Of a stretch of 64,000 bases of DNA, positions 1 through 63,124 are shown piece by piece. How positions within the stretch are numbered: the stretch's first letter is position 1; every line of letters begins with the position of its first letter. The DNA is from Hormiphora californensis (taxonomy: Eukaryota; Animalia; Ctenophora): NCBI GenBank assembly GCA_020137815.1, contig CM035356.1, positions 5,580,001 to 5,644,000 on the forward strand. The letters run 5' to 3'. Under the pieces are notes generated by a model. That model was not told the origin of the DNA. It saw nothing but the letters and a program-made list of their open reading frames with translations, and ran no database searches. The position numbers and the translations under genes were made by a program.

Positions 1-9335
<9,335 letters not shown>

Positions 9336-11362: not shown

Positions 11363-11795
11363 CATTGGCATACGTTGCAGGCCCCTTATAATATAATGCG
11401 GGGGTGCGCGCATGAGGGGGCTGCAGCGCATTCCAACTCAGGTCAAGTCGTTTGAAACGCACTTTATTAAAAACGCGCGAGCGACAAAATTAAAAGCGCG
11501 CGGCTTTAGAAAGTAAATGTTTGGCAGCGCTTTGACCGTTTGTATCGCGCGTTACATTGACTGAGCTGCGACCGGCCGTGATGCGTCCGCGATAATTTTC
11601 CGGTAGAAAAATTCTTTTGAAAAAAACTGTTCCGAAACTGAGTCCGAATTTTTAAAACTGAACTTTCGTTGCTCTTTCGTTGCTCTTTGTCTCTCTGGCC
11701 ATCGATAGGCCAGAGAGGGTTCCAGTCGTTAAGATCAACACGATCTATTATTTATATTTATTACTAGTTGAGTGTACTCAACAAACCAACCCACC

Positions 11796-14700
11796 ATGCC
11801 ATTCACCACTACAGAACACACATTCCGCCCAGATTCACATCTCAGAACTTTCGTGTTGCCTGGACCAGATACAGCTGATGTATTATCCTCCTCAGACGAC
11901 TCATCCATGAACAACTCATCCACCAACAACCTCAGGGAGAGATCCCTTTTGGGTGAATCAGATGCAGTAGACAGTTTCCTTCACGACACACGACATTCAC
12001 TAATGACCAAAATCATGTGTTGCAACTGCTCTGACTCAATATTTTACGCAGTGTTTGAACGATGTCAAGGATGTTATGGCCACCTCCATCCAGAGTGTGT
12101 TCAAAGTACCGGTGAGAGAGACGATGTGGCACGGCCTAATTACACTTATTGTTCCAGTTGTGCCATTTTAAACCCTCCCAAACAGCCTGTCCCCGATTTA
12201 TCACAGAGAAATGTATGGGGAGAGTCAAATGCCGAAGAACTGTATCACACCTTTGCTAAGATTGCAGAGACAACTAGCAGCTGGGTGCCCAACCTATTTG
12301 TCCTCCCTCATGGTCGTGAAGGGCAAAACTTTCTTGATGAGTTAACCAGGCTTGCCAAATTGTTCTCAACCGATCCTGACTCAGAATGTTATGCCCTCTC
12401 AGCATTGGTACTTGCCCCAACGCTGATCTTACAGAAGACCTCCAACAAGGCTAAAGCCTTTGACAACAAACAGCACCTTGCCAGACGTTTGGAAATGTGG
12501 AAGCAAGGCGAGTTTGAAGACTTAGTCAAGGAAGGGAAAGCCCTCCAGAAACCCCTTTCCCCGCGAGACCAGACGAAAGAAAGTTGTCTGAAGAAGTTTA
12601 TCCAGTTAATGAAAAATGGTCAGGTCTCCGAAGCTACTGGATGGCTCGACCCTGGGAGAAGTGAGTCGGGAGTCAAAACAGTCTCCCAAGACGTCTTGGA
12701 TGACCTAGAGTCGAAACACCCTCCCTCATCACCAATCAGCAGCTGTGCGGCGGATCACGGACCCCCCAACGCCCACATCCCACAGACGTTTGAATCGATT
12801 ACTGGAGATGTAATATACAATTGCGCCAGAGTAATGAAAGGATCTGCAGGACCCAGTGGTTTAGACTCAATAGGTCTCAAGCGCATGCTATGTTCACGGA
12901 AATTCAAACGTTCCACCACCGAGCTGAGAGAAGCTTTGGCACTAGTTTCCCGTTCTCTCGCCTGTAAGAAATATCATCCAAGATTCCTAGCGATGTTATG
13001 TGCATCACGGCTCATCCCTTTGAAGAAACCAGACAATGGCACCCGTCCTATCGGCATCGGTGAGACTTTACGTCGTGTCATTTGCAAAGCAGTTATGAAA
13101 TGTCAACGTAAGGAGATCAGACTAGCAGCGGGAAAGTTCCAGATGGCGGCTGGTGTCAGAGGGGGTTGCGAGGCAGCAGTGCATGCTCTACGTCAAAAGT
13201 TCGATAGTGATCAATGTGATGCAGTACTACTGTTAGACGCACAAAATGCGTTCAACACTCTAAACAGAAAACTTACTCTCCACCATGTGGCTGTGCACTG
13301 CCCAATTCTAGATACCTTTCTCAGAAATATCTACGGATGCTCCAGAGACTTATGGGTCGGTGAATCAGTGCTGACGAGTGAAGAAGGAGCCACCCAGGGA
13401 TGCCCCAGTGCCATGGGTATGTACAGTATCGGCATCTCGCCATTGATTGAAAAAGTAAAAGAAGACGACGTGTTCCAGATATTCTTTGCCGACGACGGCA
13501 ATGGTTGTGGCAAATTGGATGGCCTTTACGAATGGTACAGATCTGTGGTTACCAAAGGTCCAGCTCACGGATACATTATAAATCCTAACAAATGTGTGCT
13601 GATTGTAAAACTCGAACATCTGAGTGAAGCAGAGGATATGTTTAGTGATACAGGAGTGACAATCACTACAACAGGCAATCGCCATCTTGGGGCGGTCATA
13701 GGTTCGGAAACCTACAAGAAGGAATATGTATCTGGTGAAGTGACCAAGTGGGCCGAAGCTCTTCAAAACCTAGTGACAATCGCCAAGACTGACCCACACG
13801 TTGCTTATGCAAACTACACAAGGAGCTTCAAATTCAAATGGAGTTATATGCAACGCACAGTTCCTGGAATCGGATTACTCTTTGAACCCCTGGAGAACAT
13901 CATCCGCCACGAATTCATTCCATCTCTGCTCGGCTCACATGTAACGGATCTGCAACGGGAACTCATCGCTCTACCTGTCAAGATGGGGGGTCTAGGAATT
14001 GAAAACCCAATGCTCTCGGCTGACACTGCATACGAGCATTCTCTCCACTGCACAGGCCCATTAGTGGAGCACCTTCTCTCAGATGAAGAACTGGATGGTC
14101 CTACCATAGACAAAATCGAAAAGATCACCAGAGAGAGAACTAAGGAATGCGAAGAAAGGACAATCGAAAGACATCTTGTCCAGATGAAATCCCTGAAAGC
14201 TAGGATGACTGACACGGAAAACCGGTTACAGTCACTAAACCAAGAACCTGGGGCATCCTCCTGGCTGACAGCAAGACCCATCGAAGCACATGGACATCAC
14301 CTGACCAAACAAGAGTTTGTCGATGCGATGCACCTTCGATTTGGATTACCATTTCTCGATCTCCCCGCCAAATGCCCATGTGGGTCCAGTAACAGTGCCG
14401 ATCACGCATTGTCCTGTCACAAAGGTGGTTACACAATCTACAGACACGACCGCCTGAGAGACAACTTTGCTGATATCTTATCCTATGCTGGTGTCAGGTC
14501 TATAGAAACTGAAAAACTCCTACAACCATGTGAGGATTACGACCAAGAAATGCAGCAATATCCGTGGGCAAATACAGATAGAGACGCCCGTATGGACATC
14601 GTGTGCATGGGATTGTGGGCTCCTGACCAGATGTCCTACATGGATGTCAGAGTCTGTCACCCGATGGCAGCTTCTTATCTCAACATCAAGCCATCATCTC

Positions 14701-15005
14701 TGTACAAAAACCACGAGAAGTCCAAGAAGACATGTTACATGAGACGAGTCCAGATTGTCGAGGGCGGGACCTTTTCTCCACTAGTGTTTACCACAACAGG
14801 TGGTGTTGGCCCTGAAATGGACAAAGCGATTAAGAAGACAGCCAAACTTATTGAAAACAAACACGGAGAAATCTACAGTGAGGCTTTGGCGGCAATCAGA
14901 AGGCGGCTCAGATTCTGCCTACTGGTAGCCACCCTGAGGTCGCTGAGAGGATGCCGTACAAAGTACGCCCCAACAGGATTGGAAAACATGGACTTCAATA
15001 TTTGA
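11796..15005 (+). CDS. CRE-clade non-LTR retrotransposon ORF: PHD finger + reverse transcriptase + restriction-like endonuclease
   Basis: Uninterrupted ~1070 aa from CCACCATG at 11796; C4HC3 finger (CCNC..CQGC..HPEC..CSSC); RT motifs RPIGIGETLRR, LLDAQNAFN, EEGATQGCP, FADD; RLE CPCG..HALSC..RHD..RMDI..MDVRV..HEKSK; poly(A) at 15450-15497. Confidence 0.93.
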   Translation: MPFTTTEHTFRPDSHLRTFVLPGPDTADVLSSSDDSSMNNSSTNNLRERSLLGESDAVDSFLHDTRHSLMTKIMCCNCSDSIFYAVFERCQGCYGHLHPECVQSTGERDDVARPNYTYCSSCAILNPPKQPVPDLSQRNVWGESNAEELYHTFAKIAETTSSWVPNLFVLPHGREGQNFLDELTRLAKLFSTDPDSECYALSALVLAPTLILQKTSNKAKAFDNKQHLARRLEMWKQGEFEDLVKEGKALQKPLSPRDQTKESCLKKFIQLMKNGQVSEATGWLDPGRSESGVKTVSQDVLDDLESKHPPSSPISSCAADHGPPNAHIPQTFESITGDVIYNCARVMKGSAGPSGLDSIGLKRMLCSRKFKRSTTELREALALVSRSLACKKYHPRFLAMLCASRLIPLKKPDNGTRPIGIGETLRRVICKAVMKCQRKEIRLAAGKFQMAAGVRGGCEAAVHALRQKFDSDQCDAVLLLDAQNAFNTLNRKLTLHHVAVHCPILDTFLRNIYGCSRDLWVGESVLTSEEGATQGCPSAMGMYSIGISPLIEKVKEDDVFQIFFADDGNGCGKLDGLYEWYRSVVTKGPAHGYIINPNKCVLIVKLEHLSEAEDMFSDTGVTITTTGNRHLGAVIGSETYKKEYVSGEVTKWAEALQNLVTIAKTDPHVAYANYTRSFKFKWSYMQRTVPGIGLLFEPLENIIRHEFIPSLLGSHVTDLQRELIALPVKMGGLGIENPMLSADTAYEHSLHCTGPLVEHLLSDEELDGPTIDKIEKITRERTKECEERTIERHLVQMKSLKARMTDTENRLQSLNQEPGASSWLTARPIEAHGHHLTKQEFVDAMHLRFGLPFLDLPAKCPCGSSNSADHALSCHKGGYTIYRHDRLRDNFADILSYAGVRSIETEKLLQPCEDYDQEMQQYPWANTDRDARMDIVCMGLWAPDQMSYMDVRVCHPMAASYLNIKPSSLYKNHEKSKKTCYMRRVQIVEGGTFSPLVFTTTGGVGPEMDKAIKKTAKLIENKHGEIYSEALAAIRRRLRFCLLVATLRSLRGCRTKYAPTGLENMDFNI

Positions 15006-20473: not shown

Positions 20474-28421
<7,948 letters not shown>

Positions 28422-29968: not shown

Positions 29969-30253
29969 CTGCTTTCCTCTCTCAATTTCCGGACAGCGGC
30001 TTTTTAGGCACGATGTGAGACTGCAGTGAGAGAGATGTTTCTGGTCGAGCGGCAAATTAAAATAGACTTTGTTTCAGTGAATTGGCCAAGGGAGTTAAAT
30101 AAAAATGTGGGGGGTGGGAAACAGCATCAAAAATACAAAAAAAGAACACGCTTATTTTCTACAATGATTCAGAGTCCAAGATGTTAACATTCCACTGCCC
30201 ATGTGAGTCTCTATTTCATCTCTCTAGGCTATTTTCTCTGTAGTTCTCTGTAT

Positions 30254-30436
30254 TTAGGCGAAGTATCGGGCAACCAGGGGGATAAGGGCAGCTGTGAGCA
30301 TAACAATGGGGCTTGATCCACCAGTGACAACAGCGAAACCAGTTCCGTTGGAGGAGTTGGAGTCGTCAGCAGCGCTGACAGAGCACACCAGGGCACAGAT
30401 AACGGCCACCAACATAACGATAGTCTGAGTGTTCAT
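30254..30436 (-). CDS. 60-aa predicted GPI-anchored micropeptide, copy 2
   Basis: MNTQTIVMLVAVICALVCSVSA|ADDSNSSNGTGFAVVTGGSSPIVMLTAALIPLVARYFA: signal peptide, two N-glycosylation sequons, hydrophobic C-tail; splice acceptor ttctag 26 nt upstream of ATG. Confidence 0.8.
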   Translation of the reverse strand: MNTQTIVMLVAVICALVCSVSAADDSNSSNGTGFAVVTGGSSPIVMLTAALIPLVARYFA

Positions 30437-30769
30437 CTTGAGGTTTGAAGAGAAGAGACTTGCTAGAAAAAACAGAAGGGCTTGGTTAGTTATTGTGGTT
30501 TGGGGGAGAGAGGGTTTGAATTGAATCATAAATTGGGGGATTGGGGTTTGGTAATAAAACGCGGGGAGCTTTTTTGAAAGACGAAACATATTAAAATTAA
30601 CATAAATATCTACAAACATTTTTAGAGAGTTCATGTGCTCACTAATATATCATATCCATCATTTGGAAAGGAATAATATGTGTGTGTTCTCTAAAGTCCT
30701 GGCCTCAAGAATTCCTACAAAATTCCGGAAAGTTTCTGAATTTGGTTAGGGGGGTCCTCTCTGTCCTAT

Positions 30770-30952
30770 CTAAGCGAAGTATCGGGCAACCAGGGGGATG
30801 AGGGCAGCTGTGAGCATAACAATGGGGCTTGATCCACCAGTGACAACAGCGAAACCAGTTCCGTTGGATGAGTTGGAGTCGTCAGCAGCGCTGACAGAGC
30901 ACACCAGGGCACAGATAACGGCCACCAACATAACGATAGTCTGAGTGTTCAT
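30770..30952 (-). CDS. 60-aa predicted GPI-anchored micropeptide, copy 1
   Basis: Identical protein to copy 2; nucleotide differences are synonymous only (TCA/TCC, CTC/CTT, GCT/GCC, TAG/TAA). Confidence 0.8.
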   Translation of the reverse strand: MNTQTIVMLVAVICALVCSVSAADDSNSSNGTGFAVVTGGSSPIVMLTAALIPLVARYFA

Positions 30953-31244
30953 CTTGAGGTTTGAAGAGAAGAGACTTGCTAGAAATAGGGATCGGGTTAG
31001 TATACATGAATTATCCAATAATGTATAAACCTCATAAAATATAAGACATTTAAAAGGGGAAGAATGCATAAAGTGACAGCCTTAATAAATGTAGTAGGGA
31101 GGGAGAGGGGTGCAGCAGTTTAGTTCTGACAAAGCGGGGGAAGACAAAATAAAAATGAGACTGGAAGAGGCCGATCAACTAGAGAGAGATGGAGCGATAA
31201 CGCGTTACTACACTCATTATAGTCGTGCATACGAAGGAATCGCA

Positions 31245-31442
31245 TAATGAAAGTAAAAGAAGCTGCATAATGAAAGTGAAAGTGAGAGTATCTTGGATAG
31301 TGAAAGTGAAAGAGCGCCCATGGCAACAGCAACTCACAACAGTTATTACTGATTATGACAGCTTCTCTCAACACGCTCTCATTAATAACTCCCTCTTGTG
31401 CGTGGTATAGTGAAAGTGAAACTAAACAACGCGTTACGCGCT

Positions 31443-31541
<99 letters not shown>

Positions 31542-32280
31542 CACTAAAGATAGGAAGAGAGAACGCAAGATAGGGATAATGAGAAGAGAGAAAGAACTCA
31601 ACACAAAGAACCAAGAGAGATAGCGATAGAGAGAGAGGGAGCGAGAGAGAAAGAGAGATAGAGCTAGAGAGGGAGAGAGAAAGAGAGGGAGATTTGCAAG
31701 AGGGATGCAAAATGAAAGCAGTTTCAAGTGAAAGTGAGAGCATTTATTAAGAGAGAGAGGGAGAGAACGTTAGGAGAGCTACGAGATAAATGAAACTGAA
31801 AGTGAAACTAATTCCATAATGAAAGTTGTAGAGGCCACTGCAGCAAATTGAAAGTGAAAGTATTCAAAATGAAAGCTACTGCAGAGATTCAAAATGAAAG
31901 AAAGCAGGAGAGAGAGAGAGACGAGAGCGAGAGAAAGGGAGAGGCAAATTAGAGTGTTTTAAAATGAAAGTGAAAGAAGGAGAGGCGGGTGGAGATCTCA
32001 AGGAGATAATCCTTTGAAATTGAAAGTGAAACTAAATCAACCACCGCGCCGTTACTTTCAGTTTCAGTTTCTCACTGTCCGAATAATTGAAAATGAAAGT
32101 AATACTTTCACTTTCAATTTCTTAATGAGAAACTGAAACTGAAAGTAACGGTAGTTGCATTGATATAGTTTCTCTTTCAACTAAACGCGGTTATTTTAAG
32201 TTTCACTTTCAAACTTAAATTGAAACTGAAAGTTTAGCTCAAACTTCTTTCACTTTCACTTTGAGTGAAAGTGAAAGAAG
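31245..32280. promoter_or_regulatory. Dense cluster of IRF-E/ISRE-type motifs (GAAA[G/C]TGAAA)
   Basis: About 16 sites on both strands, e.g. 31271, 31301, 31411, 31791, 31849, 31965, 32015, 32054(-), 32104(-), 32128, 32199(-), 32221, 32247(-), 32266. Confidence 0.7.
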
Positions 32281-33491
32281 TTACGGAGACAGGGCCAAAT
32301 TATGCATTATGCGGAAAAGGAAAGAATATTGGCAAAGTTTGCCATTCTTCTCTTTGCAAGGCACTCTCTGATTCTCTCTCCCTTTTTCTCTCCCTCTCTT
32401 TCTCCTTGTTATGTAATATGTTCTAACCCTCCCTTTACATTTGTCCGAAACACAGTCTAGCCAGGCAACTTTCTCCCTATCCTCTTTTTTCACTTTAATT
32501 TTGAGGACCCGCTGGGATTCTTTGTTGAGTAAGGGGGATTCTGGCACCGAATCAAAAATTTATGTGAAAAAGGCTAGGGCCAGTTTCGGAAATATTCTGG
32601 AATTGAAGCACTAAAGGTTTGAGAAAATCTATTGGACCTAATTGGTTACAGCCAAATTCTTAATTGCTCTTAAAGAAACAGAGTGTAGGCGAAAATTAAG
32701 GCACCAAAATATGTAGCGTCCTCGTCCCTCGTAATAGTGAGGGCAGACACCAAAATTAATCTCATTAAATTAATGAGTATTAATAAGCGCATACCCGGAA
32801 ATTGGGTATGCTGTTTCTTTAGAATTGGTTATGGTGGGTTTGAGTATTTCCTTGGGCACCTCGCGCAATCCCCTGTACGTAGCGCTGCCAAAGGACTTCC
32901 CAAAAGAGGAACTTTTAAGCTCTATCTCCAACCATTTAGCCGTAGTTTGAATTCAAGGGTGCTCAAAAGCAGGTTTTTGCCTTTTTTTGCTTAATTTCAG
33001 TAGCAGTAGCAGAAACGAGACACGAGTGATCTGTAAGATCGCTGGTCATAGATTTTGTCATAGATTCTGTCCTCTCAGTACCGTGCCAAAGGCCCGGTGT
33101 GGCTGCGAGTGGCCGCGTACCTATTCTAGCTGCTGTAATAGAACTAGAGAGCTGGAGAGGTAGCTGTATATAGGTTGTTGAGACAACATGTTGTTGTGCA
33201 GAGAGTTGATTCCTAGCAAGCATAGAGAAACTCTGCAGAGATGCTCTAGGCTTGCAAGCACAACTAGTTTTAAAAAGTTGTAGAATTCTGCTTGATCCGA
33301 CCATTGCATGCAATTGCAGTTCTATTCTATCAGGGGAATTAACCGCCACAAATTGAACTTGTAGTTGTAGGATTAGGTTTTAATTTTAATTTAAAATTAA
33401 TCTCTGTACAGTACGTGGGATATAGATTATAGTGTACAGAAAAATTCTTCTCTCTCTAGTCTCTCTAATAGAAAGTCTCTCTAATAGAGAG

Positions 33492-35540: not shown

Positions 35541-35731
35541 ATCTTTCTGAAACTACTCTATTCACGAGCGAATAGAGTACACGTCACTTTGCCGGCTACT
35601 TTCGTATACTTTCGTCTCAAAGTGAAAGTTGTAGGATAAACAACTTTCACTTTGAGACGAAAGTATACGAAAGTAGCCGGCAAAGTGACGTGTACTCTAT
35701 TCGCTCGTGAGTAGAGTAGTTTCAGAAAGAT
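35541..35731. mobile_element. 191-bp near-perfect palindrome (MITE)
   Basis: ~92-bp inverted arms around a short loop, AT at both ends. Confidence 0.75.
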
Positions 35732-35900
35732 TCTGCCTTCGAGCATCACAAAAAGTTTTTGTGGTGCTCAAAGGCAGAATCTGGCCTCACCCAGTAGAAG
35801 CTAATTGTGAAAGGAGTGGCAAATAAGGGAAAATGAAAGTGAAACTGAAAGTAGCGGTAGGCCAAAGATAACAGGGTCCCAGGGCCAGAATAAAGATAAG

Positions 35901-37037
35901 GGGCTCTTCGACGAAACTTTAAACACACTTAAAAACGTTGCGTAACTCTCCTTTCACACCTTCTAATTGATTTTCACACCCCTTAAGCATGGTTTGTGTC
36001 GACGAAACTTTTTAGAAATCTTGCTTAGTGAAAATTGAGGGGTAGTAAGTGAAGTTTTACACAAGCTCTCCAAACCTTGCGTAACCCCCTAATCACGTGG
36101 TAAAATCACGTGATTTGGGCCAAATTGAAGCGACAATGACGTCATAGTTCACGCAATATCTCACTCAAATATCGAGAAAAGTGAGGTTTGTTAAGTCTCC
36201 TCCAGAGGAGACTTAATGGTAGACAAGACAGCGCTGGCAAGTAAAAGATGCTACAAAACAGTGTATATTTTGCTTCTCGCATGTAGAAAAAAGATAAAAT
36301 GGCACTCATTGTCCCCCAATTAGCTATCTCTACTCAACCACAATATTGAGGCACTAGTTTGGGGTTTCAGCCAAGCCCATACTGCATACAGCATCTGTAT
36401 TAGACTCTCACAGTCAGATAAGATGTGGATGAATTCAGTTGTTTTCCTTCTGGCAGGACAAGATGAACAGTGAACTACTACTATACTTTCACTGTTTATC
36501 TCTTCATCTAGCAGCTTATCTATTCATCTCATCCGGCCTAAATAATATTGCAAGTTATTAGTGTATAGGTTTATTGATTTTTCATAATGAACAATCAATG
36601 TTAGATCTCTATTTGTCCGCTATAACATTCATTGCCAGCTACTGTAAGAGTACACAGAGTTTTGAAGATTTGAAATTTCTTGAATCTTGAGAAATGGAAG
36701 TCAAACTTCTTCTTCACCCCCAATCTGGTGTGATATCTCGCTAACACTATTGGCTGGTGAACCCTACACGTGACCAAATTGACGCCTGTGTAAACCCATG
36801 TAATGGAAATCCTATCACGTGTCCAGTTTCGATCCCCTGATTGGTTTTCTACACCCATACACGAGGGGTGATCCGGGGCTTCACGTGGTATACACGTGGT
36901 TCACACCAAGGACCTAAAGTGAGGTTTTGGAAAGCGTTCGACGACACCCCTCTCGAGACAAGTCTGAAAAATTTTCCTTGTGTAACTCTAAAGAGAGCTT
37001 ATTTATTAAGTGTGCTTTAAGTTTCGTCGAAGAGCCC
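35901..37037. mobile_element. Non-autonomous TIR element, PIF/Harbinger-like
   Basis: ~32-bp TIR GGGCTCTTCGACGAAACTT..CACACTTAA; 3-bp direct repeat AAG on both flanks. Confidence 0.65.
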
Positions 37038-37224
37038 AAGGTCCCAGAATTATTGGATTTCTGCTGAGAGCGAGATGACAACGTGATACTGATTATTATA
37101 AATATAAGTACTGGCCGAAAGAATGTCTATAATTCGAATGGTATTCGTTTAAAAGACGGCAAGAGGGTAAAGGCTGTTCTATAGAATCTCTATGACATAA
37201 TCGTTAGATGCTGAATATTTCGAT

Positions 37225-37715
37225 AATGAAACTGAAAGTGAAAGTGAAAGTATACCGCGTTGCCTGCTGCAGCAGAGAATGATAGTCGGAATGATAGTCG
37301 GAATATGTCGGAGTAATCATAATCCTTGCCTGCTTGCTGCAGTAGAGATCAATGAAAGTGAAAGTAATGGTACTAGTCCTTGCCTGCTTGCTGCAGCAGA
37401 GAATGAAAGTGAAAGTAATGATAGTCCTTGCTTGCTATAACTGCAGTAGAGATCAATGAAAGTGAAACTGAAAGTTGACTGCCATTACAGAGAAAGTGAA
37501 AGTAGTGACCTAGCTACACTGCCTTGAATAATTATAGAGAATGAAAGTGAGACTCTATGTGTGCGAGAGATTCATATGCATATTTATATGGTTACCACAC
37601 AGGATAGTGGCCCCTTTGTTAGAATAACAATATAGCTTATGCAGTATTCACGATGTTTCACTTTCACTATTATATGCACCTTCACTATTTATTAGAAGAG
37701 AATGAAAGTGAAAGG
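37225..37715. promoter_or_regulatory. Second IRF-E/ISRE-type motif cluster, partly in ~55-bp tandem repeats
   Basis: TGAAACTGAAAGTGAAAGTGAAAGT at 37227 plus sites at ~37353, 37404, 37457, 37491, 37654(-), 37703. Confidence 0.65.
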
Positions 37716-38260
37716 CCGCAGCTGGGGGGGGGGGGGACAAAGAAACCCCGCAGGAGCCTTGTTCAGGGACTAGGGAGTCTCTATTCAATTTGAGTTAGGG
37801 AGCAGCTCTATGTGCCATGAGGTGCATCGCTTGTAGTATAATATGCCTCCATTCAGACGAGTGTAGTTATCTCTGCATAGTATGTCTATTTCTAATGTCT
37901 ACGACGACATCGGACATGTCTACGACAAATGAGCAATTGAAGCAAAACTGGTTAGGATATTATAAAAGTGAGTACAAAGGGCATCGCTATAAAACGGTGC
38001 AGTTAAAATCTCAATAAATTTCCCAAACCTGGATTAATCTTGGATACCTAATTTGGACATATCTGTGATTATTCTGAGGTGCATCTGTCAGAGCATTGGC
38101 CTGACCCATTCTCGTTTCTCTGAGAACTGTGGTCAGAGCATTGGCCTGACAGAGGTTCATGCACGACTGTTTTCCCCCATTCACTAAACTATAGTTTATT
38201 GATACTCCCAACTGTCACTGAAAAACATTCTCATTTCTCATGTTTACCGACCAGCTGCAG

Positions 38261-44393
<6,133 letters not shown>

Positions 44394-45376
44394 TGACAAG
44401 TATGTTTATATGCGACTAGGATATATATGTGTGACAAGGATGTGCGAAGGAGTGTTATTAGATTACAGAATACGTGTAGGCATGGGTTTTATGTGTAGCT
44501 CCCCACCCGCATAGTGTGCTTGACATTTTATTCCGTGAATGAAGAATATAAAGATCCAAATTCCTGGGAGCAGATATTGAGAACATATTCTGTATATATC
44601 TGGTGTATAAATTGCTAAGATCTAGTCTAAGATCTAGTCTAAGATCTAGTCTAAGATCTATAGATTCTGGATTTCAGCTTACAGCTGCAAGACGTTAGAC
44701 TACAGCTAGGCCGATAGGATTCCTAGTAGGATTCCTAGTAGAAGCTAGGCTCAAGGTCGTGAAAGACCTGATAAATAATCATATTGTTAGTATCGTCTTG
44801 ATATTGAATAATGGTATCCCCACAGTCCATTGAATTATACAGGCATTCAATGAATGGCATTAGCCTTGGGTAGGTATAGAAGAAGGAATCCGACGAATAA
44901 CTTGGACACATATCAGAATTGAATTATTAATATTTAATATCTCTGTCAGGGCTATATAACATTATGGGATGATGGGAATGGACTCACCGAAGGGCCATGA
45001 TCTTGGTTAAGAAAATGGGTATGAGAAATACGGATTACGGAATTACATTAACTTACCAGGCCCGCGTCTAGATGAAACTAAAAACGTTTGATCTCCAGAC
45101 GGACGTCAGAGCTCTGAAACGACGTGTCGAGCTGTGGCTTGGCATGTTATTGCCACCTATTATAATAGGCATGTATTACCTAGCTTATAATAGCTAGAGT
45201 CTAGACGTCACAGTTGTTGGTCGTGTGAATCCAACCGGTCCAGAAGCTGTGTGGGGTGACGATCTGAACGTAATTGAGGATCAAAACAACAAATAAGAAA
45301 ATTATTATTATTATTATTTCCTGAAACATTCGATGGATGATTCGAAGAGCCTGACCCAGTTCATTACCGGTCCAGA

Positions 45377-46313
45377 CCCTGTGCTCTACCCTGTACTCTA
45401 CCCTGTGCTCTACCCTGTGCTCTACCCTGTGCTCTACCCTGTGCTCTACCCTGTGCTCTACCCTGTGCTCTACCCTGTGCTCTACCCTGTGCTCTACCCT
45501 GTGCTCTACCCTGTGCTCTACCCTGTGCTCTACCCTGTGCTCTACCCTGTGCTCTACCCTGTGCTCTACCCTGTGCTCTACCCTGTGCTCTACCCTGTGC
45601 TCTACCCTGTGCTCTACCCTGTGCTCTACCCTGTGCTCTACCCTATGCTCTACCCTGTGCTCTACCCTGTGCTCTACCCTGTGCTCTACCCTGTGCTCTA
45701 CCCTGTGCTCTACCCTGTGCTCTACCCTGTGCTCTACCCTGTGCTCTACCCTGTGCTCTACCCTGTGCTCTACCCTGTGCTCTACCCTGTGCTCTACCCT
45801 ATGCTCTACCCTGTGCTCTACCCTGTGCTCTACCCTGTACTCTACCCTGTGCTCTACCCTGTACTCTACCCTGTGCTCTACCCTGTGCTCTACCCTGTGC
45901 TCTACCCTGTGCTCTACCCTGTGCTCTACCCTGTGCTCTACCCTGTGCTCTACCCTGTGCTCTACCCTGTGCTCTACCCTGTGCTCTACCCTGTGCTCTA
46001 CCCTGTGCTCTACCCTGTGCTCTACCCTGTGCTCTACCCTATGCTCTACCCTGTGCTCTACCCTGTGCTCTACCCTGTGCTCTACCCTGTGCTCTACCCT
46101 GTACTCTACCCTGTGCTCTACCCTGTACTCTACCCTGTGCTCTACCCTGTGCTCTACCCTGTGCTCTACCCTGTGCTCTACCCTGTGCTCTACCCTGTGC
46201 TCTACCCTATGCTCTACCCTGTGCTCTACCCTGTGCTCTACCCTGTGCTCTACCCTGTGCTCTACCCTGTGCTCTACCCTGTGCTCTACCCTGTGCTCTA
46301 CCATGTGCTCTAC
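45377..46313. repeat. 12-bp tandem repeat (ccctgtgctcta), ~78 copies
   Basis: Direct reading; rare single-base variants. Confidence 0.97.
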
Positions 46314-46654
46314 GGAGCTTTTCAGAAAAGCTGCTTTTCTGGATGAGCTTTACAAGACAAATCCAACGCAACCGGATTTAGTTTTCTATAATCTTATAGC
46401 TATAGGAAAGGAATTTTTGGTCATTTTTTGGTGCTCGAACCAATCAGAATTTCGGAATCCTGGCTCGCACGCCAAAAAGTGATTTGGCTGCGAAGCAGGT
46501 GTGAGGGTTTCGTGAAAAATCGCGCGCGAAAAAAGAGGGCGCGACGTGCCCAAAAAAGTAATAGACCAAAAATGAAGAAAAGAAAGCTAAATATAGTTGC
46601 GTTGGATTATCATTAAGCTTATTCCTTTTTACCTCTAATTACCTTCTCTAATTA

Positions 46655-48729: not shown

Positions 48730-50105
48730 ATGTATCTTGTGAGCCTAGTGGTGATTTGCTTCCTTCAACTTGCCAATTCCTACGAATATTCGTACGATTG
48801 TTACGACCAGAAATGTAGTGGGACGGGCACCTACTCAGACTACTACATTACATGTGACCAGAGACAGTATTATAACCAATCGTGTTCCGTGGAATCAGAC
48901 GGGTACCCACGGTGTGATTACGGTGATGGTGGAAGTATTAGTAAGTATGACTAAAGCTGTAGTCTAAAGGATTGTTTCTATTCGGTTTGAGTACTATATA
49001 AGTGATTGTGAAACAGTAGTATTGAGTACTTATGTGCCTCGCCCGGCTAATCTAGTGAATCTCCTTGCTGTACAGCTTGTTAAACAAGGAAGTGAAACTA
49101 TAGGGTTCTGTACAGAGTTTCTCTTTACTATTCACATCATCCCCCATAAAAAAGTCGCTTGGCAAATTCCCTCGTCGCTCGGCAATTGGTTCGGCAACAA
49201 CAGGTGGTTTGCCGAGCCAGTCGCTCGGCTAATCAAGGAAGTCGCCGTGTTTTCACCGCGTTCTTACAGAAAAAGTACATTTTTTCAGCACTTTTTTTCA
49301 AAATCTCCTGCTGAAAAATACAAAGTGCTGAAAAAATGTGCTTTTTCTGTAAGAACGCGGTGAAATCACGGAGACTTCCTTGATTAGCCGAGCGACTGGC
49401 TCGGCAAACCACCTGTTGTTGCCGAACCAATTGCCGAGCGACGAGGGAATTTGCCAAGCGACTTTTTTATGGGGGATTTACATTCTAAAAATATGATGAC
49501 TGGTATCGCCCTGCTGCTGTGCGCGGGCATATCAACTAACTACTATTAGATAGTAGTGGTACTAAAGCTGTAGTCTAAAGGATTGTTTCTATTCGGTTTG
49601 AGTACTATATAAGTGATTGTGAAACAGTAGTATTGAGTACTTATGTGCCTCGCCCGGCTAATCTAGTGAATCTCCTTGCTGTACAGCTTGTTAAACAAGG
49701 AAGTGAAACTAGAGGGTTCTGTACAGAGTTTCTCTTTACTATTCACATCATTTACATTCTAAAAATATAGTAGGTACTCAGTGAGTACCTACTGGTCTAG
49801 GTAGGATCATGATCCGAATCGTGGGTCCTGGCATGAACCAAGATATGGAAGAGCACGGACTTCACATGCTCCTACTCTCATTAAATGGGGAAGTACCTGG
49901 GCCAAACGGATACCCGGCTCTCGCGGGCACAATGAGGCTCCTGGCGTGGACACCTAAATTGGGGGAAGGGAAACCAGCCATCGGCTACCTCGATTTCGAC
50001 GAGGAATTCTACGCGGGCGTCACTGCCCGAGGTGGAATCCTCACTACATTCGAGGGAACCTTTGAGTGCACCCTGGCCAATGATAATTTGCCGTCCATAT
50101 TTTAA
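48730..50105 (+). CDS. Small secreted Cys/Tyr-rich protein, probably two exons (48730-48940 + 49801-50105, ~171 aa)
   Basis: Signal peptide MYLVSLVVICFLQLANS, five Cys in a Tyr-rich segment, gtaagt donor at 48941 (phase 1) in frame with AG acceptor at 49800 and ORF 49809-50105; acceptor lacks a strong pyrimidine tract. Confidence 0.5.
48950..49768. repeat. ~208-bp tandem duplication, first copy carrying a MITE
   Basis: actaaagctgtagtctaaagg..cattctaaaaatat at 48950-49493 (interrupted) and 49561-49768 (empty). Confidence 0.9.
49141..49475. mobile_element. Palindromic MITE with CCC termini and 2-bp AT TSD (CMC/EnSpm-like)
   Basis: cccccataaaaaagtcgcttggc.. inverted ends; empty site ttcacatcATttacattct visible at ~49742-49760. 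Confidence 0.85.

Positions 50106-50838: not shown

Positions 50839-63124
<12,286 letters not shown>

Follow-up and report, generated by a model that had tools for sequence, protein, structure and literature searches.

Two 60-codon open reading frames lie in tandem beside a dense cluster of GAAA-type motifs in a 64-kb stretch of Hormiphora californensis DNA (here called the window), and the questions that this locus raises are whether those frames are genes, what kind of peptide they would encode, and by which factor the cluster, if regulatory, would be bound. A first-pass annotation, made from the nucleotide sequence, had proposed CD24/CD52-like GPI-anchored micropeptides under the control of IRF factors. 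The coordinates of the features considered are collected in Table 1.

Table 1. Features of the micropeptide locus, in positions of the window.
Feature	Start	End	Strand	Remarks
Second (GA)n tract	29839	29967		~110 bp past the 3' end of copy 1
mRNA body, copy 1	30076	30462	-	26-nt 5'UTR, ORF, ~178-nt unique 3'UTR
Proximal micropeptide ORF (copy 1)	30254	30436	-	60 codons and stop TAA
Trans-splice acceptor AG, copy 1	30463	30464	-	tttctAG/CAAGTC
mRNA body, copy 2	30634	30978	-	26-nt 5'UTR, ORF, ~135-nt unique 3'UTR
Distal micropeptide ORF (copy 2)	30770	30952	-	60 codons and stop TAG
Trans-splice acceptor AG, copy 2	30979	30980	-	RNA contigs with leader
Main cluster of the A.A.TGAAAGTGAAA[GC]TA element	31240	32280		17 strict and 22 loose sites, both orientations
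(GA)n tract inside main cluster	31445	31692		reads (CT)n on the gene strand
Motif cluster 2a	35618	35852		partly within a ~190-nt palindrome (self inverted match 35541-35731)
Transposon, 1.14 kb, with terminal inverted repeats	35899	37042		between clusters 2a and 2b
Motif cluster 2b	37228	37715		partly a 54-bp x 3 tandem array
Two isolated strict sites	39099	39635		at 39099 and 39626

Transcription and Maturation of the Gene Pair

Two very small protein-coding genes, arranged in tandem, make up the locus. Both minus-strand ORFs of the annotation encode the same 60-aa protein, the copies differing in their DNA at three third-codon positions, all of them synonymous, and in the stop codon. A direct duplication of 219 nt, 98% identical, encloses the two ORFs, whereas the 3'UTRs of the copies are unrelated in sequence. 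A divergent allele in one run (X10) had coding changes that were synonymous in three of three instances, as judged from codons read by eye, along with 4 substitutions and 2 insertions within ~70 nt of UTR. The restriction of the differences between the copies to third positions next to unrelated 3'UTRs, taken together with that allele, thus indicates purifying selection on the coding sequence.

The micropeptide stretch was present in 20 listed runs from 9 studies, 17 of which runs are recorded as RNA (marine metatranscriptomes). The RNA contigs extended over 30076-30287, 30182-30314, and 30202-30464 for copy 1, and over 30638-30980, 30634-30803, and 30774-30980 for copy 2; their coverage was confined to the two mRNA bodies, the intergenic and upstream DNA being bare. 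At both acceptors the contigs shared one non-genomic leader, present as a loose end on contig 30202-30464 in copy 1—where the acceptor AG coincides with the terminal AG of the leader—and in two runs, from two studies, in copy 2. That leader, whose sequence occurs 632 times genome-wide and 0 times in the window, is identical to the spliced leader published for H. californensis, so that a ctenophore host, as earlier supposed, is borne out by the loose 5' contig ends. The micropeptide mRNAs accordingly carry the leader of the species at an AG acceptor with no copy of it nearby, and the presence of leader-bearing contigs at such acceptors establishes that both ORFs belong to real, processed mRNAs of ~0.4 kb each, so that the transcription on which the annotation depended was indeed found. 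For each gene, spliced-leader trans-splicing at a separate AG acceptor yields a ~0.4-kb mRNA, whose first AUG opens the 60-codon ORF. Upstream distances were counted from the ATG or from the acceptor, the original 5' end being removed by trans-splicing.

Two genes on one strand, with ~170 nt between the 3' end of copy 2 (~30634) and the acceptor of copy 1 (30464) and with the leader on both mRNAs, recall the SL-resolved operons of nematodes and tunicates. More than half of the Hormiphora mRNAs, according to published data, carry the spliced leader in any case, however, and an operon here would be putative. Regarding the surroundings, a BiP-like Hsp70 gene, convergent to the micropeptide genes, ends at 28421, and an Rfam search of 29-40.5 kb for ncRNAs gave no family at the gathering score.

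The Predicted Peptide and Its Relatives

On a rule-based reading the peptide consists of three parts: a signal peptide, a stub of 7-9 residues with two N-glycosylation sequons (NSS and NGT), and a GPI-type tail. The N-terminal hydrophobic core scored 3.4, which value is rule-based only, and the predicted site of signal-peptide cleavage has A, V, or T at -3 and A at -1 in all family members. By the same rules every member has the small-residue site, N-G-T-G or, in the paralogue, S-G-V-G; a spacer that varies follows, and the tail reaches the C-terminus. A filter for an N-terminal hydrophobic core combined with a hydrophobic C-terminal tail retained only these two ORFs from ~284 kb in six frames. 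We consider it very likely that the micropeptide genes are real and secretory.

The family has three genes in this genome—two here and one paralogue on another chromosome (C10)—and the relatives P0001, P0002/5, P0003/6/7/8, L037, and L038; it was found only in ctenophore-like sequences, with members in other ctenophores. Of two metagenome scans the first gave no match, and the second recovered relatives as 5'-truncated transcript-like contigs devoid of upstream DNA; four copies of the P0003 type are carried by a 35.6-kb ENA contig. The relatives retain the sequons and N-G-T-G, together with the Pro and the tail ALIP..AR.FA, while the spacer and the signal peptide vary; the three-part plan that the annotation had described is conserved among them.

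The precursor would enter the ER and there shed a signal peptide of ~22 residues, would be N-glycosylated at the NSS and NGT sequons, and would most likely be cleaved at the conserved N-G-T-G site with transfer to a GPI anchor, the product being a ~9-residue glycopeptide stub on the cell surface. The peptide is thus probably a tiny, sugar-coated, lipid-anchored surface peptide, the GPI anchoring itself being predicted with somewhat better than even confidence. If, alternatively, the C-terminal hydrophobic segment were retained, the product would be a micro-membrane-protein of type I that ends in R-x-F-A on the cytoplasmic side and undergoes no GPI exchange; which topology, independent of the three alternatives considered below for the motif clusters, we hold to be appreciably less probable. 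Family members agree more closely in the tail ALIP..AR.FA than in the signal peptide; this is unexpected if the tail is a discarded GPI signal and speaks for retention. In the distant relative P0003, however, the residues before the conserved Pro are polar, leaving ~14-18 hydrophobic residues that include two prolines—short for a membrane-spanning helix—while the N-G-T-G (or S-G-V-G) placed 9-10 residues upstream and followed by a variable spacer has the layout of a GPI signal, and the nearest clusters in feature space are all GPI glycopeptide precursors. We retain the GPI-anchored stub as the preferred reading.

As to its affinities, the peptide resembles in its predicted layout CD52 (CAMPATH-1) and CD24, whose precursors likewise have ~60-80 residues and set a minimal N-glycosylated mature segment between a signal peptide and a GPI signal at the C-terminus; an ESM feature search, which we take as a lead only, placed CD24 as the top neighbour of two family members and plant arabinogalactan peptides second. 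The likeness is nevertheless architectural, as the annotation had itself maintained: Pfam gave no family for the window peptide, P0001, or exon 2 of the paralogue, including CD24 (PF14984) at E up to 10, and membership in CD24 or another Pfam family was rejected on that search. The micropeptide family differs from CD52 and CD24, moreover, in having been found only in ctenophore-like sequences, in having no Ser/Thr/Pro-rich O-glycan region, and in a GPI attachment that is predicted from sequence. The plant arabinogalactan peptides (AGP, PF28140), for their part, are three-part precursors of equal size, but belong to another kingdom, carry Hyp O-glycans instead of N-x-S/T sequons, and likewise had no Pfam match to the family. 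The design of CD52, CD24, and the plant peptides would accordingly have been reached without detectable homology, and the family, if read correctly, would represent an independent invention of a minimal design: a GPI anchor that carries almost only N-glycans.

The Motif Clusters of the Window

Motifs were counted with a loose pattern, GAAANNGAAA, and a strict one, GAAA[GC]TGAAA. The loose motif had 47 matches in the window, where 4.45 were expected, distributed as 22 at 31272-32323, 16 at 35829-39635, and 9 elsewhere; the strict motif had 17 matches at 31272-32276 and 14 at 35.8-39.6 kb, leaving 2 for the remaining 55 kb. The annotation had counted ~16 sites just upstream of the genes, where the loose pattern gives 22, and had seen next to none outside 31-40 kb; its observation is confirmed by these numbers. 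Going upstream from the distal ATG (30952), one meets the first site after 320 bp (~300 bp from the micropeptide acceptor), and the satellite clusters reach to 9 kb. Genome-wide we found 2,520 strict sites in 110.7 Mb, against which mean the 1-kb cluster is ~740 times denser (Poisson P ~4e-43, with overlapping sites not fully independent).

The repeated element, of 14-16 bp, is composed of two to three GAAA half-sites with a 6-bp periodicity and a 2-nt spacer, in both orientations. If, as one possibility, the clusters had arisen neutrally, by slippage and local duplication of a hexamer of the (GAAAGT)n type, chance or descent from a single segmental duplication would explain their nearness to the genes. 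(GAAAGT)n microsatellites, as well as minisatellites with the motif in their units, do exist elsewhere in the genome; the strict 10-mer is genome-wide only 1.6 times commoner than its reversed control; and part of the site count does stem from recent local duplication, as seen in the perfect inverted repeats of 20-26 nt within the clusters, one of them of 26 nt, and in the 54-bp array. Nevertheless, the sites of the main cluster are set in unique spacers, of which TRF called nothing tandem except the GA tract; the bases flanking the search pattern are themselves conserved, with the same bases at the two family loci; those two loci (C7 and C10) have ~30 perfect sites each and no other detectable non-coding similarity; and the same arrangement stands upstream of unrelated secreted-protein genes, as detailed below. 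We thus regard a neutral origin as very unlikely.

We also rejected an origin of the cluster from a transposon or dispersed repeat, since a genome search with the main cluster recovered copies that matched the (GA)n part alone, and the other repeated sequence was the 1.14-kb insertion, which has at least 30 other genomic copies of 93-99% identity; cluster 2b has no copies elsewhere in the genome. The cluster is accordingly not the common dispersed repeat that would have told against the annotation. A role at the RNA level, within the outron, is judged unlikely because the sites occur in both orientations and because their direction with respect to the gene is reversed between the window locus and that of the paralogue.

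The putative role of the cluster as a cis-regulatory element of the micropeptide genes is what we consider likely, the homotypic cluster at 0.3-1.3 kb upstream being the element by which transcription would most likely be driven, with satellites to 9 kb. The clusters could, alternatively, serve another gene, for instance the convergent BiP-like Hsp70 or one at 38-44 kb that lacks annotation, with the micropeptide genes as mere neighbours; in favour of which assignment are the 9-kb extension, the clusters at 37-39 kb that have no assigned target, and the ORFs at 38-44 kb, for which Pfam gave no match. The paralogue, however, has the same clusters with no BiP-like gene seen among its neighbours, and the nearest sites are as close to the micropeptide acceptor as stated, so that we consider this explanation the least probable of those presented here.

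Clusters at the Paralogue and Elsewhere in the Genome

The link between cluster and gene recurs at the sole paralogue, in whose region (C10) 22 and 10 loose sites were found as compared with 0.74 and 0.91 expected, with an extended motif consensus equal to that of the window locus. At three further loci (L028, L032, and L019) clusters lie 0.2-0.9 kb upstream of the signal-peptide exons of small secreted-protein genes, of which the L028 gene ends in a GPI-type tail, as does a candidate last exon at L032; a comparable (GA)n tract precedes the paralogue and two other cluster-linked genes. From this recurrence the motif is probably to be read as an enhancer common to several genes. The element, frequently accompanied by a (GA)n tract, lies 5' of the paralogue and of three or more additional small secreted-protein genes, and would thus serve a whole battery of genes. 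The association of clusters with secreted-protein genes reached roughly P ~0.08 in a small sample examined post hoc, and the other sampled clusters were near GPCR, TAF7, or retroelement ORFs. The Cys-rich genes beside other clusters appeared by eye likely to be Ly6/uPAR members, which identity was unsupported exon by exon in comparisons with Pfam and PDB sequences; they are therefore classed as Cys-rich secreted proteins, and no further.

IRF as the Candidate Binding Factor

In vertebrates, the IRF-E/PRDI/ISRE is a repeat of the hexamer (AAGTGA)n bound by IRF1/2, the ISRE core being GAAANNGAAACT, and the core AAGTGAAAGT is the site of PRDM1/Blimp-1. The window element has the same construction, namely tandem GAAA half-sites with a 2-nt spacer in the form GAAANNGAAA(C/G)T, and shares with the vertebrate element an identical core GAAAGTGAAA[GC]T, the T before it, an A-rich third half-site, the occurrence of sites in both orientations, and an IRF gene in the genome. 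That gene, which the annotation had presupposed and which lies on C1 at 7863712-7863885 and in the exon that follows, is the only one with an IRF domain (PF00605, 52 bits, above the cut-off), a result that agrees with the single IRF listed for Hormiphora in a published review. The encoded protein has the conserved Trp pattern and the WKA.FR helix, and its second exon aligns to helix 3 of IRF1/2. In that recognition helix the Arg is kept, while C is changed to N, N to H, and S to K; which four residues we take to be those that contact bases in IRF1/2.

Because the element is letter for letter the vertebrate core, the single IRF is the prime candidate binder, and that it binds the cluster is, on this resemblance, a tentative proposal to which we give slightly less than even weight. 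The vertebrate case differs in having one to three sites where each locus here has dozens, as well as in the three recognition-helix residues that are changed in the ctenophore IRF. If, on the other hand, the clusters were real enhancers of the small-secreted-protein battery bound by another factor—a PRDM1/Blimp-like zinc finger or a ctenophore-specific cell-type selector—the genes would be expressed constitutively as markers of a single cell type and would have no immune meaning. With this explanation would agree the alteration of three of the four base-contacting residues, the transcripts in field metatranscriptomes from 9 studies, the result that Pfam detected no immune-type domains near the other sampled clusters or in the ORFs at 38-44 kb, and the overlap of the AAGTGAAAGT core with the same core of the window element. 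The periodic multi-half-site structure in both orientations, however, is the signature of IRF multimers and fits an IRF better than PRDM1/Blimp-1, and apart from the residues named the DNA-binding domain of the IRF is well conserved; binding by a non-IRF factor is therefore, in our estimation, fairly unlikely. The IRF remains the binder that we favour, and the account as a whole—trans-spliced genes for GPI-linked stubs under a GAAA-cluster enhancer with the IRF as prime candidate—we deem a little more probable than its negation.

An immune function is a different matter. We know of no interferon system in ctenophores, and the occurrence of the transcripts in many field samples points to constitutive rather than induced expression; that the micropeptide genes would be immune-inducible we consider unlikely. 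More doubtful still is the further-reaching model in which the single ctenophore IRF would bind the clusters and activate a whole set of small surface glycoproteins linked by GPI, upon infection or in an immune-type cell, with the CD52-like stubs as the strongest targets.

The IRFs are specific to animals, and their target logic is known mostly from vertebrates. Hints of that logic have been published for cnidarians, and our search of the published literature yielded no ctenophore for which an IRF target or IRF-type element had been described. Here a defined 1-kb fragment containing 17 perfect sites can be set beside a paralogous locus as control, with the abundant short mRNAs serving as read-out, so that the age of the IRF DNA code becomes directly testable; if the further-reaching model holds, a circuit in which an IRF acts through GAAA-repeat elements on surface-effector genes would go back to the root of the animals and be older than interferons. 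The putative promoter/enhancer, being compact and apparently strong, might in addition find use in ctenophore transgenesis.

Transcription of the Micropeptide Gene Pair

The two 60-aa minus-strand ORFs of the first-pass annotation were present, and the proteins that they encode are identical. Between the copies, the only differences are three third-position codon changes and the choice of stop codon (TAA versus TAG); because their similarity is limited to the block running from the polypyrimidine tract before the AG to the stop codon, the 3'UTRs being unrelated, the coding block is likely to have evolved in concert or under selection. RNA contigs from other samples show one of the synonymous differences with its two states apparently exchanged (G>T at 30353, T>G at 30869), suggesting either gene conversion or a polymorphism shared between the copies. 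A divergent allele from one run had three coding changes, all synonymous by our reading of the codons, along with four substitutions and two insertions in the adjacent 70 nt of UTR.

The micropeptide stretch was contained in 20 listed runs of nine studies, mostly oligo-dT marine metatranscriptomes, with 17 of the 20 being recorded as RNA. In four runs from as many studies, the contig coverage was confined to 30076-30464 and 30634-30980, and 29975-30075, 30465-30633, and 30981-31435 were uncovered except by one spurious 33-nt piece; a gap of some 170 nt lies between the 3' end of copy 2, near 30634, and the copy 1 acceptor at 30464. Three contigs run on from the AG acceptors at 30463-30464 and 30979-30980 into a spliced leader, which joining at both acceptors excludes DNA contamination and shows a processed mRNA of roughly 0.4 kb for each copy; the transcription on which the first-pass annotation depended is thus documented for both ORFs. 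Since neither the leader nor the 26-nt 5'UTR contains an ATG, that of the ORF comes first in the mRNA. The transcripts in many field samples fit a constitutive expression.

The loose 5' end on the RNA contigs placed at this locus occurs 632 times in the assembly (45 contigs, 110.69 Mb) and never in the window (C7:5580001-5644000), the reversed control giving 0. It is the 3' portion of the published 44-nt spliced leader of Hormiphora californensis, a species with an assembly described as 110 Mb in 13 chromosomes (PMC8527503); the ctenophore origin suggested in the first-pass annotation is thus right. At six leader-bearing places on contig C1 (L004-L009), conservation was limited to about 33-42 nt of the leader, the sequence directly after ...TTTGAG being different in every copy, with no common donor or Sm-site region and with a shorter 5' end in two of the six; these places may represent unusually built leader mini-exons, or else 5' ends that were retro-copied.

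Peptide Architecture and Gene Family

By rule, without a predictor, we assigned to the micropeptide a hydrophobic N-terminal core with cleavage behind residue ~22 at a small-x-small site, a polar region carrying the NSS and NGT sequons, a strictly conserved N-G-T-G, a variable spacer of nine residues, and a hydrophobic tail that starts with Pro and finishes in A-R-Y-F-A. Only the two copies passed a two-ended hydrophobicity filter on the six-frame ORFs of about 284 kb. For the C-terminal segment a GPI signal is favored, since the hydrophobic stretch that follows the polar spacer in a distant family member would be too short for a membrane-spanning helix; the tail is nevertheless conserved to an unusual degree, which feature keeps alive the reading of that segment as a membrane anchor.

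In the Hormiphora genome the family comprises the two window copies and one two-exon paralogue on contig C10. Searches of protein sets of 5.8 billion and 1.8 billion returned only P0001 (72-77% identity), P0002/P0005 (a near-identical genomic ORF), and P0003/6/7/8 (four variants, the longest contig for each having 35,624 nt and possibly being one and the same). Two JGI contigs also hold members; on one of these, a 922-aa ORF, ELP1-like by eye, shares, when compared one exon at a time, no more than 40-72% identity with a Hormiphora gene, and to judge from that divergence the family is present across well-diverged ctenophores. This ORF is intron-free and convergent with the 3' part of the micropeptide gene, its match in Hormiphora being a gene on C11 with several exons; the contig probably stems from transcript assembly. 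All the members retain the sequons, the small-residue site, the Pro, and the tail, whereas the signal peptide and spacer drift. CD24 and plant AG peptides are neighbors of two members in ESM feature space, at scores that we treat as leads only. A Pfam search of the family peptides, in which spliced models were taken one exon at a time, matched no family, CD24 included, in keeping with the earlier caution that the likeness to CD24/CD52 is architectural and not a demonstrated homology.

Feature coordinates in the window and at related loci
Feature	Location	Strand	Remarks
Micropeptide ORF, copy 1	window 30254-30436	minus	60 aa
Micropeptide ORF, copy 2	window 30770-30952	minus	60 aa, protein identical to copy 1
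C10 paralogue, exon 1	L014:9798-9868
C10 paralogue, exon 2	L015:216-318
Motif locus L028	C11		Cys-rich protein; last exon ends in small residues and hydrophobic tail
Motif locus L032	C13		Order cluster, (GA)n, tttctag acceptor as at micropeptide genes, ATG; candidate last exon with similar tail
Motif locus L019	C1		Order cluster, (GA)n, cluster, TATA-like box, ATG
922-aa ORF, other ctenophore	L038:1392-4160	minus
1.14-kb element	window 35899-37042
Near-perfect palindrome	window 35541-35731		~190 nt
Minisatellite	C9:5076185-5077792		38-bp unit
Minisatellite	C6:2613725-2614559		33-bp unit
Minisatellite	C1:5285281-5285621		41-bp unit
LDL-receptor class A + rhodopsin-type 7TM gene	L015:6766-8650 (C10)
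LDL-receptor class A + rhodopsin-type 7TM gene	L030:7186-9468 (C12)
Third 7TM gene	L017:7664-8713
Hsp70/BiP-like gene	window ~20474-28421	plus	Multi-exon
Retroelement ORFs	window 7303-7902, 11772-15005, 51954-53885		Reverse transcriptase and RNase H domains
Tandem-repeat open frames	window 43404-44399, 45201-46346	both	4-bp CTGT-type and 15-bp units
Signal-peptide-like start	window 48730	plus	Followed by Cys/Tyr-rich stretch

The Motif Cluster

The window has 47 occurrences of the loose motif GAAANNGAAA versus 4.45 expected, with 22 sites at 31272-32323, 16 at 35.8-39.6 kb, and nine elsewhere; accordingly, the dense cluster first described as about 16 sites in 1 kb is real and richer than stated. 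Nine of the 333 genomic occurrences of the exact 12-mer GAAAGTGAAAGT lie in the window, and the strict 10-mer GAAA[GC]TGAAA, found 2,520 times genome-wide, reaches at 31272-32276 about 740 times its mean density. Alignment of all the strict sites gave the consensus A.A.TGAAAGTGAAA[GC]TA, in which the T on either side of the core and an A-rich third half-site lie outside the search pattern; the C10 sites yield the identical consensus. Since the sites face either way, a role at the DNA level is favored over one at the RNA level.

Apart from a (GA)n tract, the main cluster has no tandem structure, and no copies of it were found elsewhere in the genome, contrary to what a common dispersed repeat would give. 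The clusters at 35.6-37.7 kb are likewise unique, and are divided by an element of 1.14 kb that has terminal inverted repeats and at least 30 genome copies of 93-99% identity; this element resembles a non-autonomous DNA transposon that was active recently and landed in the second motif cluster. The arms of a palindrome nearby each end in CAAAGTGAAAGT at the center. Three minisatellites hold one strict site per unit, and the one with the 33-bp unit could be coding.

Association of the Motif with Genes

The surroundings of the C10 paralogue contain 22 and 10 loose sites per 10 kb versus 0.74 and 0.91 expected, and a sense-strand (CT)n tract precedes its ATG by about 0.4-0.5 kb, as at the window locus; non-coding similarity between the two loci was not detected. 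Together they hold about 2.4% of the strict sites of the genome. Among 20 loci fetched on the sole criterion of containing the motif, three (L019, L028, L032) had a convincing signal-peptide exon of the right strand with a cluster lying 0.2-0.9 kb upstream. By a rough count, noticed post hoc, some three such exons were observed versus one expected (P ~0.08), and the association of the clusters with secreted-protein genes is suggestive only. Other clusters were minisatellites or lay near GPCR, TAF7, or retroelement ORFs; two LDL-receptor class A 7TM genes lie within a few kb of clusters, and a third 7TM gene was also seen. The micropeptide genes are probably under a homotypic IRF-type enhancer common to a small gene battery.

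The motif core does not differ from the hexamer repeat of the vertebrate IRF-E/PRDI or from the core of the ISRE, and it overlaps the PRDM1 site. We found one IRF-domain gene in the Hormiphora genome, in line with the single IRF homologue that a review gives for Hormiphora and Mnemiopsis (PMC11359984). In the two exons of this gene that encode the DNA-binding domain, the Trp pattern and the WKA.FR beginning of helix 3 are preserved, while among the four base-contact residues of IRF1/2 the Arg is kept and the other three are changed. On these findings the IRF is the best candidate binder, and a candidate only. The observation of the first-pass annotation is thus confirmed and its interpretation supported in part: the gene family is real, expressed, and lineage-specific and encodes a putative CD52-like surface glycopeptide, while IRF binding and an immune role are hypotheses.

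Other Features of the Window

An Hsp70/BiP-like gene converges on micropeptide copy 1; Pfam HSP70 was matched by one of its exons, the final exon ends in ...RTEL, and a possible first exon at 20474 encodes, by eye, a signal peptide and then an Hsp70-like N-terminus. Retroelement ORFs occur in three places. Two long frames of short tandem repeats, open on both strands, are probably not coding. The signal-peptide-like start at 48730, with no motif cluster nearby, may be that of another small secreted protein.
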